Sequence record: AP019418.1
DNA: 64,000 nucleotides
Strand: one strand, 5' to 3'
Of this stretch, positions 26,391 to 29,006 are shown in pieces (positions within the stretch are counted from its first letter, which is position 1; each line of letters opens with the position of its first letter). The position numbers were made by a program, and so were the translations under genes. The notes beneath the pieces are model-generated. The model had not been told where the DNA came from. It worked only from the letters and a program-made list of their open reading frames with translations, and made no database searches.

Positions 26391-26885
26391 ATGTCAAATA
26401 AAGCTAAAGAACCAACTCTAACTAAAGAACAGGAAAAGACTCTACGTCTATTTGAACGTGCAGTTGGAGCATCAGCTGCCGCAGCTGATCATATTCTTAA
26501 CCGTGATGGTTGGGATGTTGTCAATGTACTAGCAGGTTCCGTAGGTAAACGTATTCTACAAACTGAAGTATTCATTAATCCAGTTATCAATAAGATCAAT
26601 GAAATCATTCCGACGTTATCTGATCCTACTGGATTCCAAAAGAACCTACAAACAGTTATTGCTGACCTTAATCGACTAACTAAAATTATCAGTGTCCTAT
26701 ATGCACAACATCAAGGTAAGGCTGGTCCAGCAAATAATGAAGATGAACTAAAACTCATCAGTGAACTTGTTACTAAATACACTGGTATTGAAGGTGCTAT
26801 TGAACGCGGTATTGATGGTGTAATCCTAGCGATGATCGGCACTCTTCGAGAAGCTGGTTGGGACGAAAAACTAATTCAACAATAA
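26391..26885 (+). CDS. Hypothetical protein, gp78-like
   Basis: 164 aa, GGAG RBS. Confidence 0.7.
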   Translation: MSNKAKEPTLTKEQEKTLRLFERAVGASAAAADHILNRDGWDVVNVLAGSVGKRILQTEVFINPVINKINEIIPTLSDPTGFQKNLQTVIADLNRLTKIISVLYAQHQGKAGPANNEDELKLISELVTKYTGIEGAIERGIDGVILAMIGTLREAGWDEKLIQQ

Positions 26886-26896
26886 TGGAGTTTTAA

Positions 26897-28498
26897 ATGG
26901 CTACTGCTGACTTCGATAATGAGTACGATGATACTCCAGAAGAGAATTTACTAGATCAAATTGATGAGATCAATGCGCAACACGATCCTGACTCTAGTAT
27001 TGAAAATAATGACGAGGTGGAAACTCCACCTTTCGTTCCTGATCAAAAAGAAATTAAACTACGTATTCCACGTAATGCTAAAACTGGAAATATCCGGGAT
27101 GCTTCTGAACCGGCTATTAAAGATAGTGCTAGCATTCTTACTTTACTACGTGAGAATCCCCAGACTGTTTATAATTTCCTGGATCACAATAAAGAACTAT
27201 TTAAAGCATTTGCTGATAATAAAGTAGATGACACTAGTGACGGTGTAAAGTGGACAGCTGCTATTCTGGAAGGCTTAGCTCACTCTATTGTTGAAGATGC
27301 GCCAATCGGTGCAACTGCCCGAGAAGGTTCTGAATGGTCTAGTGAAATTCCTTATGGTGAAAAGATCATTCGACCTGGCCGACCTGTATTTAATACCAAT
27401 GGTCGTAAAATGACCGATGATGAAACTCTAGTTTTCCTAACACGTAAAGCTAACATCGGTACGCCATATGATACTTTCCTACCTCATTCAGGTATTTGGG
27501 TAAAACTACGTGCACCTACTGGTACTGAAGTAGCTGCCCTACAAGCACGTCTAGCACAATTAAAGATCCGGCTAGGCGCTGAATCAAAAGGTATGCTGTT
27601 CTCAAACATGGCAGCTGTGTTACTTAACATGGTTAGTAGTTTAGCACTTGCATGTGTTATTCAATCCAACTATAAGTTCAACACCCCAACTGATCTAGAG
27701 CATGTTATCTCAGTAGCTGATGAGCCGTTCTTGCATCACGCACTAGCGGCGACTATGTATCCAGATGGATTTAATTATAGTTATCCATGCATTGCAGATG
27801 CCAATACATGTAACCATATTGAAACAGCGAAACTTAATATGTCAACGCTTGTTCAATATGATCTACTGGCATTCTCAGAAGAACAAAAGAAATATATTGC
27901 ACGTAAGTTTAATGCATGTACTGAATCTGATCTTAAGACTTATAAAGAAGGATTCCGTATTGAAACTCAAGTAACTGAAATGTTTGGTGACGTTGGTGTT
28001 GTTCTTGAGATGTGTACAATTGCTGATCGCCGAGAGTCTGGTGATAGTTGGATTAACTCAATTATCGATATGACTCAAGGTAGTTTTAATGAACCAGTCG
28101 ATGGTCCGCAACGTTCTCAGTATATTGCACGTTTACAAAAGATCTCTATTGCCCGTCAGTTCTCACATTTTGTTAAAGAAATTAAAGTACGTGAAGATGA
28201 CGATGGTGAAAGTTCTGAAGACAATATTCGTACTGCAACCACTAATCGTGAAACTATTGAAAAGTTCTTAACTAATATTCTATCCACACCGGAATATAAT
28301 GACCGCTTTATTAATGCGGTGAGTAACTTCATTGATTCACAACTAATTGGAATGATTGCAATTACAAGTTGGAATTGTCCAGTATGTGAGTCACCTGCTG
28401 CTACTAAATTTAAAGAACGTTTCCCACACTTAATCCCTATTGACATGCTGTCAACTTTTTTTACTTTGGCGGCCTCGAAGTCAAACCGGATGGTGTAG
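26897..28498 (+). CDS. gp77-like protein, possible baseplate-hub/tail assembly chaperone
   Basis: 533 aa; CxxC-type motifs (YPC...TC, NCPVC); ends LIPIDMLSTFF over a T7 run. Confidence 0.7.
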   Translation: MATADFDNEYDDTPEENLLDQIDEINAQHDPDSSIENNDEVETPPFVPDQKEIKLRIPRNAKTGNIRDASEPAIKDSASILTLLRENPQTVYNFLDHNKELFKAFADNKVDDTSDGVKWTAAILEGLAHSIVEDAPIGATAREGSEWSSEIPYGEKIIRPGRPVFNTNGRKMTDDETLVFLTRKANIGTPYDTFLPHSGIWVKLRAPTGTEVAALQARLAQLKIRLGAESKGMLFSNMAAVLLNMVSSLALACVIQSNYKFNTPTDLEHVISVADEPFLHHALAATMYPDGFNYSYPCIADANTCNHIETAKLNMSTLVQYDLLAFSEEQKKYIARKFNACTESDLKTYKEGFRIETQVTEMFGDVGVVLEMCTIADRRESGDSWINSIIDMTQGSFNEPVDGPQRSQYIARLQKISIARQFSHFVKEIKVREDDDGESSEDNIRTATTNRETIEKFLTNILSTPEYNDRFINAVSNFIDSQLIGMIAITSWNCPVCESPAATKFKERFPHLIPIDMLSTFFTLAASKSNRMV

Positions 28499-28959
28499 TT
28501 AATGATCTGAGATATAGTCGTCTTGAGGCCACTTTCAAGGAAGATAGTGGTCACATCCTACATCCAAACTTTGGTTATGATAAGTTAACTGAAGATGATA
28601 CACACTTAGATAGACTATTATCGACAGTAGGGGCAGTAAGACCGTCTACAGCAGCACGTTTAACAAGAGAAGCATATCTACTTGATTACGATATCGGTTC
28701 ACCAGAAAACGGACCCATGTGGTTAAATAAGGTAAATCCTAAAGAGGACTTTATCGAAGGTGGGTTGAGAAGGAGACTGACTAGAGATTTCTTCAAGTAC
28801 AAAGTAGGTAGCTTATCTAATATGTCATTAACTGAATTCTTTGAATTAGCTTATTCTGAGGTAGAATACATAATTGAATTATGTAGAAATATTACCCATA
28901 ATGAAGCTGTTAATAACAATAACCAGTTAAATGAATTAAACAAGCCGTTAACTAAATAA
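28456..28959 (+). CDS. gp76-like frame, open from the T TTT TTT site; candidate -1 frameshift extension of gp77
   Basis: Frame of ORF 28717..28959 stays open 85 codons upstream with no ATG/GTG/TTG and overlaps the gp77 end at the 7-T run. Confidence 0.65.
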   Translation, partial: FFYFGGLEVKPDGVVNDLRYSRLEATFKEDSGHILHPNFGYDKLTEDDTHLDRLLSTVGAVRPSTAARLTREAYLLDYDIGSPENGPMWLNKVNPKEDFIEGGLRRRLTRDFFKYKVGSLSNMSLTEFFELAYSEVEYIIELCRNITHNEAVNNNNQLNELNKPLTK

Positions 28960-28970
28960 AAAAAAATAAA

Positions 28971-29006
28971 GACAGGCCCCTCTCCACATGGAGAGGGGTT
29001 TATGTC
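28971..29006. terminator. Bidirectional terminator
   Basis: CCCCTCTCCA-CA-TGGAGAGGGG with upstream A-tract and downstream TTTATG. Confidence 0.8.

Follow-up and report, generated by a model that had tools for sequence, protein, structure and literature searches.

Does the gp77 gene of a phiKZ-like "nucleus-forming" giant phage end where its annotated stop codon lies, or is it extended through a change of reading frame at a run of seven T's near its 3' end? The window analysed here is a stretch of 64,000 nucleotides from record AP019418.1 and corresponds to a phiKZ-type phage, being 100% identical to PA02. The original prediction, made from the sequence alone, proposed a -1 frameshift at the T run joining gp77 to a start-less downstream frame, followed directly by two hairpins and resembling the lambda G/GT arrangement. 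We have first verified the underlying sequence statements. The gp77 frame-0 ORF (26897-28498, + strand, 533 aa) ends with the codons ACT TTT TTT ACT, the T7 run occupies 28456-28462 and it sits in the X_XXY_YYZ phase of that ORF (T_TTT_TTT). The -1 frame is open from 28444 to 28959 and its first ATG/GTG/TTG is found at 28717, 85 codons after the run. Reading 522 codons in frame 0 and 165 codons (28462-28956) in frame -1 gives 687 aa, as originally computed. The observation therefore held in its sequence statements, whereas the two hairpins could not be confirmed as anything special (see below).

The recoded gene as a whole would span 26897-28959 (+) and is preceded by the gp78 homologue (26391-26885, +, 164 aa; phrog_14050, unknown function), the first gene of this small + strand unit, which occupies the same position before the gp77 homologue in all annotated relatives. 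A terminator scan revealed a G+C-rich hairpin with flanking A and T runs between the convergent units (28977-28998), a likely bidirectional terminator closing the gp78-gp77 unit. The gp77 frame-0 product matches phrog_4585 and is the Chimalliviridae core gene cg18, listed as "hypothetical protein" and equated with Goslar gp081, PhiKZ gp077 and RAY gp267 in Table S3 of PMC10299810; the downstream ORF is not listed there. Four Cys residues of gp77 (C298, C305, C494 and C497) are nearly invariant, and its AF2 model had a pLDDT of 78 and a pTM of 0.80. The extension (28462-28959, +) comprises 165 codons plus the stop. Alignment of its homologues (A2) showed that residues ~45-165 (28594-28956) form a conserved C-terminal domain, predicted to be helical, with an invariant Tyr and a PKED..EGG motif; it matches phrog_12109, and the AF2 pLDDT was above 90 over this part (gp77 and the extension were always handled as separate pieces). 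The 39 homologues found for it are all 45-175 aa long. The ORF annotated in phiKZ as PHIKZ076.4 (28717-28959, +, 80 aa) starts at the first ATG, and PA02 annotates an even shorter one. Both are truncated annotations that cut the conserved domain, and no database record annotates the longer form.

We have then investigated whether this layout could have arisen by chance, and the comparison makes it much more than chance. The window contains only 3 T≥7 runs against 16.4 expected from a first-order Markov model, and the run in gp77 is the only one of them inside a long ORF in sense orientation. In 85 of 86 related loci, the conserved downstream domain lies in the -1 frame, and it is never in frame 0. 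These loci give 74 non-identical junctions, from phiKZ to Goslar, RSL2, PCH45, EL-like and SPN3US-like phages, which fall into 40 clusters at 50% identity and 12 at 35%. In these junctions the -1 frame is always open across a T5-T8 run placed at the same Phe-Phe codons. Of the 69 junctions that were typed, 48 have a full T_TTT_TTN heptamer, the remainder having N_TTT_TTY or T5; 21 lack a T in the first heptamer position and 6 have only T5. All 47 independent phiKZ-like assemblies keep the same run length. An exact-pattern scan of IMG/VR found only one phiKZ-type contig, and so is uninformative on population variation.

The codon usage supported selection on the run itself. TTT makes up only 31% of the Phe codons elsewhere in these ORFs, but 68 of 69 at the first site codon. 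Other Phe-Phe pairs start with TTC in 36 of 38 cases, and T≥6 runs occur 3 times in the other 109.5 kb. Stops in the -1 frame occur at 0.082 per codon in the ORF bodies, but never between the site and the frame-0 stop. In two lineages a -1 frame stop abuts the heptamer, which confines the change of frame to a segment from 7 nt before through 24 nt after the end of the Phe-Phe codons. The frame-0 codon +2 is 97% conserved with 93% synonymous changes, so that the short form also matters.

We examined whether the downstream frame could be translated independently or exists elsewhere as a fusion. The first start codon lies downstream of the start of the conserved domain in 34 of 69 junctions, and a start codon plus an SD-like motif lies ahead of the domain in only 3 of 69. 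The extension length is constant (148-179 codons). By tblastn, the extension is conserved from its first residue, with 32-40% identity in other genera. The original prediction would have been refuted by homologs lacking the overlap or the slippery site, or by a lack of protein-level conservation in 28462-28716; homologues keep both the overlap and the T run, and this region is conserved. No fused long protein was found in any search, which covered 1.8 billion representative proteins, and all full-length phiKZ-type members are 533 aa. Homologues of 686-687 aa among the predicted viral structures (BFVD), from phiEaH2 and a metagenomic phage, initially looked like fused forms. However, phrog_8054 (693 positions) aligns gp77 residues 139-501 to its positions 291-652, and SPN3US-like loci still have the T7 run and a separate -1 ORF, indicating that the extra length is N-terminal.

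In contrast, the proposed stimulatory hairpins are not supported. The 90 nt from the run folded with z = -0.61 against dinucleotide shuffles. The first stem starts only 2 nt after the run and the second has 3 base pairs, and neither is present in the minimum-free-energy fold. Across the 69 junctions the mean z was -0.28, against -0.29 for control windows (p = 0.50), and RNAalifold gave a consensus of -0.57 kcal/mol with no covariation. Thus, the site does not fulfil the canonical requirement for a stimulatory RNA structure 5-9 nt downstream, or an upstream SD-like element, although these analyses do not exclude a distant stimulator. It does fulfil the other sequence requirements of a -1 frameshift cassette, namely a slippery heptamer in the phase of the upstream frame and an overlapping -1 ORF, open across the site, with no initiation signal of its own.

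Taken together, these data are most compatible with a programmed -1 ribosomal frameshift, a reading to which we assign a probability of roughly 0.6. In this view, most ribosomes read frame 0 and stop at 28498, giving the 533-aa protein, whereas a fraction slip back one base while the two tRNA-Phe sit on the U run and continue in the -1 frame to 28959. The resulting form of about 687 aa would share the first 522 residues, replace the end of the last helix with a Pro/Gly-rich linker and add the conserved helical domain of about 120 residues, both forms being under selection. What the analysis establishes is the site with its phase and open frame, the family-wide conservation of the run, of the -1 relationship and of the extension, and the absence of a usable start codon in many lineages. 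The long form itself is inferred from sequence alone, as are the ribosomal nature of the slip, its being a minority event and a joint action of the two forms, possibly in baseplate-hub or other particle assembly. Homopolymer "six" and "five" motifs are recognised classes among annotated backward frameshifts, and imperfect heptamers work in phage T7 gene 10; on the other hand, U_UUU_UUU is much less shift-prone in E. coli than the best heptamer (PMC5009743), and the lack of a detected downstream structure and the imperfect junctions also weigh against this reading, as does the fact that a homopolymer is also what transcriptional slippage needs. The interpretation originally proposed was hence supported in part: its core claim, a -1 frame change at the T run, is strongly supported by the comparative evidence, but the hairpins and membership in the lambda G/GT family are not, and sequence cannot decide whether the ribosome or the RNA polymerase makes the slip.

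Programmed transcriptional slippage is the main rival, although we consider it the less likely of the two. The phage's own multisubunit RNA polymerase would stutter on the A run of the template, and standard translation of mRNAs with a different U-run length would give the same products. The conserved element is a pure homopolymer, 42 of 69 junctions have T7 or T8 (T8 adding nothing to a heptamer), and no RNA structure accompanies it. The depletion of T≥7 runs in the window is what one would expect if long runs are hazardous for expression, and these phages transcribe with non-canonical polymerases of unknown slippage behaviour. However, bacterial RNA polymerase slips efficiently at runs of about 9, and T5C5 gives no detectable slippage without context (PMC5009743). 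The runs found here, T5-T8 with 27 of 69 being T5 or T6, fall short of that length, which need not apply to the phage polymerase. The run always grows 5' into the preceding codon, giving the X_XXY_YYZ phase, but since this is also the only synonymous direction the argument is weak. A more speculative version, which we regard as doubtful but not excluded, is that slippage takes place in the phage nucleus and is conserved across all nucleus-forming phages; the ratio of the two forms would then be a property of the viral transcription machinery, possibly differing between the virion and non-virion polymerases and so changing through infection.

Two separate genes, with the T run conserved only because Phe-Phe is, appear unlikely. 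The downstream protein would be started at varying or non-canonical codons, or by re-initiation after the gp77 stop. Gene callers find a start somewhere in every lineage, 201phi2-1 has a TTG overlapping the gp136 stop, and about half of the junctions have some start codon before the HMM-defined start of the domain. Yet, start positions are ragged and often cut the folded domain, and phiKZ, Phabio and others have none for 56-85 codons of conserved sequence. Independent starts would explain neither the -1 relationship in 85 of 86 loci, nor the stop-free -1 frame back to the run, nor the choice of TTT. An artefact or decay, that is, a homopolymer sequencing error or a recent mutation splitting a single gene, is very improbable. 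Homopolymers are error-prone, and one relative (RVTF4) has one additional frame change inside the extension, but the uniform run length in the 47 assemblies, the relative frame shared by 40 clusters, the failure to find an in-frame version and the conserved frame-0 tail rule it out unless most public assemblies share one systematic error.

We found no description of this site in the searchable literature, including under PHIKZ076.4 and gp76.4. Mentions of "gp77" in three papers refer to other phages' genes, the Goslar virion paper names neither gp81 nor gp82, and the PCH45 Tn-seq text does not name the gene. gp77 is one of about 70 core genes that define the Chimalliviridae. If the recoding is real, every member of the family makes a hidden second form of this core protein, to which belongs a conserved domain of about 120 residues now annotated as assorted truncated small ORFs or not at all. 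This would change the core-gene list and correct the annotation of hundreds of genomes. It would also give a concrete handle on the protein's role, as two forms in a fixed ratio is the hallmark of assembly chaperones. Moreover, a recoding site kept across proteins diverged to about 20% identity, apparently without a nearby RNA structure, is a useful natural case for asking what a bare U run can do on bacterial ribosomes or on a phage RNA polymerase.

Among known systems, phage lambda gpG/gpGT and the conserved tail-assembly-chaperone frameshift of tailed phages (Levin 1993; Xu 2004; summarised in PMC5009743) share the logic: a -1 shift a few codons before the end of an upstream ORF yields a major short form and a C-terminally extended form with an extra domain, and the arrangement is conserved across very divergent phages instead of being fused in frame. 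For gp77 the two forms are inferred. However, the likeness is one of logic only and gp77 is not a lambda G/GT homologue: it has 533 aa rather than about 140, and its neighbours in PA02, phiKZ and 20 relatives are the gp78 homologue, small ORFs, a RAD2/SF2 helicase and a head protein, with no tape-measure gene nearby. Pfam searches of gp77, of the extension and of six distant homologues gave nothing, PHROGs returned only the unknown-function families 4585, 8054 and 12109, and a role in tail assembly would be hypothetical. Phage T7 gene 10 likewise is decoded by bacterial ribosomes, has a U-rich slip site involving Phe codons, tolerates imperfect first heptamer positions and lacks a simple adjacent hairpin, its stimulator being far downstream; but it encodes a capsid protein, its extension is short and it is not conserved across a whole family. 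In Thermus thermophilus dnaX and in IS-element transcriptional slippage (PMC5009743), a homopolymer inside a gene gives two products, as proposed for gp77, but those runs are about 9 long and transcribed by the host polymerase, whereas here the runs are T5-T8 and the polymerase is phage-encoded.

The predicted fold of gp77 weakly resembles the T4 gp26/gp51 baseplate hub assembly proteins (PF12322). Foldseek against BFVD placed proteins of about 250 aa, named baseplate hub subunit or hub assembly protein, behind the Chimalliviridae homologues (E 1.5e-4 to 1e-2, TM 0.5-0.59 on the target). There was no solved structure to compare with: a PDB fold search gave nothing below E 0.9 for either AF2 model (best hit 0.96). 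One GenBank record cites GP26_BPT4, and both families have four conserved Cys residues, although the Cys pairs are in the opposite order. Profile comparison did not confirm the resemblance: T4 gp26 and gp51 both hit PF12322, whereas gp77 and six distant homologues did not, and hhalign of the alignment A1 against gp26, gp51 and a 17-sequence family alignment gave probabilities of 4%, 2% and 9.5%, respectively. T4 gene 26 gives two products, 26 and 26', as inferred for gp77, but makes its second form by internal initiation and not by a frame change.

The region 26897-28959 is 100% identical to Pseudomonas phage PA02 and 95-100% identical to 46 further phiKZ-type records. In phiKZ the two annotated ORFs are PHIKZ077 and PHIKZ076.4, whereas PA02 has gp77 and only a 45-aa remnant annotated downstream, and some records annotate nothing after gp77. 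The gp77 ORF (26897-28498) encodes 533 aa. The bases 28456-28462 are seven T's, which in the gp77 frame read as the last base of ACT followed by TTT TTT, that is, in the classical X_XXY_YYZ phase. The -1 frame has no stop from 28444 to 28959 and its first ATG/GTG/TTG is at 28717. This confirmed the original observation of a slippery T run where the end of gp77 overlaps a start-less -1 frame, and the arithmetic of the predicted product lengths of 533 and about 687 aa (522 plus 165 codons) was also correct. The window as a whole avoids long T runs, with 3 runs of T>=7 against 16.4 expected from a first-order Markov model, while A>=7 runs are about as expected (5 against 6.2). The gp77 run is the only one lying in sense orientation inside a long ORF, and none of the others lies inside an annotated gene in sense orientation. 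A 132-aa GTG ORF runs antisense across the end of gp77 and the T run (28156-28554, minus strand), but no relative annotates it and it is probably not a gene. A 9-bp G+C-rich hairpin flanked by A and T runs (28977-28998, with A9 at 28958-28966) lies between the convergent gp77 unit and the minus-strand small ORFs. It looks like a bidirectional intrinsic terminator and sits 18 nt after the stop of the -1 frame, so that the extension is inside the gp78-gp77 transcript.

We then investigated if the start-less stretch is conserved, searching the -1 frame piece on its own and never joined to gp77. By tblastn it matched PhiPA3, PA1C, Psa21, Phabio, Noxifer, 201phi2-1 and Viktualia at 32-40% identity, and in most of them the match began at residue 1 of the piece, directly after the T run. 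In those genomes the matching frame is again -1 relative to the gp77 homologue, overlapping its end by 49-178 nt, and a T5-T7 run sits at the same Phe-Phe codons. A conserved motif block lies upstream of the first possible start codon in phiKZ, Phabio and others. The comparison was extended to six distant genera (LucasX, Goslar, RSL2, AH06, FBKp24 and PCH45) and subsequently to five more loci (EL-like DT01, SPN3US-like SPFM4, Asesino, Halocynthia phage JM-2012 and a Vibrio phage). All showed the same picture, with T6-T8 at the Phe-Phe codons, the next ORF in the -1 frame, and that frame open across the run.

A scan of IMG/VR added 71 loci, and profile HMMs of gp77 and of the downstream domain were run on stop-to-stop segments. 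The domain fell in the -1 frame in 85 of 86 loci, in frame +1 in one, and never in frame 0. The 69 non-identical junctions of that set had run lengths of T5 (6 junctions), T6 (21), T7 (27) and T8 (15), and 48 of them formed a full T_TTT_TTN heptamer. With the five later loci, the junctions fell into 40 clusters at 50% protein identity and 12 at 35%. A search of IMG/VR for natural length variants, using two short patterns whose run length differed from that of the window, found nothing.

The run is not conserved only because Phe-Phe is. Elsewhere in the same ORFs, TTT is 31% of Phe codons, other Phe-Phe pairs begin with TTC in 36 of 38 cases, and runs of six or more T occur three times in 109.5 kb, whereas at the site the first codon is TTT in 68 of 69 junctions. 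Chance does not explain the open -1 frame either. Inside these ORFs the -1 frame carries a stop every 12 codons on average, yet none occurs between the site and the frame-0 stop, a distance of 8-44 codons, in any junction. In FBKp24 and PCH45 this frame-0 tail is 37-44 codons long, against a median of 13, and their short form would therefore have a substantial C-terminal segment of its own, overlapping the start of the extension. In two lineages a -1 frame stop directly abuts the heptamer. Aligned on the site, the change of frame must therefore happen between 7 nt before and 24 nt after the end of the Phe-Phe codons, and the T run is the only conserved element in that span.

Both forms seem to matter. 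After the site, frame-0 codon +2 is 97% conserved and 93% of its differences are synonymous, and a few codons later the synonymous signal moves to the -1 frame. In the AF2 model the site lies in the middle of the last predicted helix of gp77, residues 517-532. The -1 reading replaces the rest of that helix with a Pro/Gly-rich stretch of low confidence, which is followed by a confidently predicted helical domain.

An independent start of the downstream protein found little support. The first canonical start lies downstream of the start of the conserved domain in 34 of 69 junctions, and a start with an SD-like motif ahead of the domain exists in only 3. Gene-caller N-termini are ragged and several cut into the folded core; in phiKZ, the annotated 80-aa ORF would lack two predicted helices and the single invariant Tyr of the domain. 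By contrast, the length from the site to the -1 stop is nearly constant, at 148-179 codons. A fused form was never found: a full HMMER pass of the extension over 1.84 billion representative proteins returned 39 relatives, all of 45-175 aa, and gp77 relatives are 485-633 aa. Every full-length member of the phiKZ gp77 cluster, seen on more than 100 contigs, is 533 aa, and all 47 phiKZ-type GenBank assemblies keep the same run length. A sequencing error or a recent mutation is therefore excluded. One relative, Pseudomonas phage RVTF4 (PQ015378.1), keeps the T6 site and the -1 start of the extension, but the rest of the extension continues in another frame; this additional frame change may be an assembly error in that record or a genuinely disrupted extension in a viable phage. 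Tiny contigs (222-673 bp) carrying fragments of phiKZ gp77 and of its -1 frame extension are deposited as "partial" proteins of Klebsiella pneumoniae and Enterococcus faecalis assemblies, most likely reflecting phage carry-over or contamination in those sequencing runs.

The layout and its conservation are established by sequence comparison, while the production of the long form and the step at which the frame changes are inferred. The two hairpins that the original prediction placed directly after the run are not supported. The 90 nt from the run in the window fold no better than shuffles (z = -0.61), the 60 nt downstream across 69 junctions have a mean z of -0.28 against -0.29 for control windows in the same genes, and RNAalifold on eight Pseudomonas-phage junctions found no conserved pairing. 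The original interpretation was partly supported. What remains is a bare U run. In favor of the ribosome, the phase is right, and T5 and T6 versions persist; "six" and "five" homopolymer motifs are recognised classes among annotated backward frameshifts (PMC10885494) and imperfect heptamers work in T7 gene 10 (PMC5009743). In addition, bacterial polymerases slip efficiently only at about nine residues (PMC5009743). In favor of the polymerase, the element is a pure homopolymer, often T8, there is no RNA structure, and these phages use their own unusual polymerases. We put ribosomal frameshifting at a probability of about 0.6 and regard transcriptional slippage as possible but unlikely, whereas it is very likely that the site is a genuine recoding site of one kind or the other.

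PhiKZ gp077 is core gene cg18 of the nucleus-forming phages, listed as a hypothetical protein, and the downstream ORF is absent from that core list (PMC10299810, Table S3). Pfam searches gave nothing and PHROGs gave only unknown-function families. Four nearly invariant cysteines (gp77 residues 298, 305, 494 and 497), the last two as CxxC, suggest a zinc site. The AF2 model is good (pLDDT 78, pTM 0.80) but a structural search found no PDB neighbour. Against predicted viral structures, the model first found Chimalliviridae homologues and then, at E-values of 1.5e-4 to 1e-2, proteins of about 250 aa named baseplate hub subunit or hub assembly protein. One GenBank record cites T4 gp26.

No description of this site was found in the literature that could be searched, and none of the roughly 30 GenBank records inspected annotates a joined CDS. 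Recoding of this kind is already known, and the site is notable for being family-wide in a core gene and for its apparent lack of a nearby stimulator.

We have compared gp77 with T4 gp26 and gp51 (NC_000866, 7803-9229), which are paralogues, both matching Pfam PF12322 over their full length; gene 26 is annotated with a second, internal product, 26'. T4 gp51-family proteins also have four invariant Cys residues, but with the CxxC pair first, and profile-profile comparison with gp77 was not significant. The hub-assembly idea is a lead and not a result. If it is right, the analogy drawn in the original prediction with assembly chaperones made in two forms would be apt in function. Even so, gp77 does not belong with lambda G/GT itself, from which it departs in size, in position relative to a tape-measure gene, and in family match.
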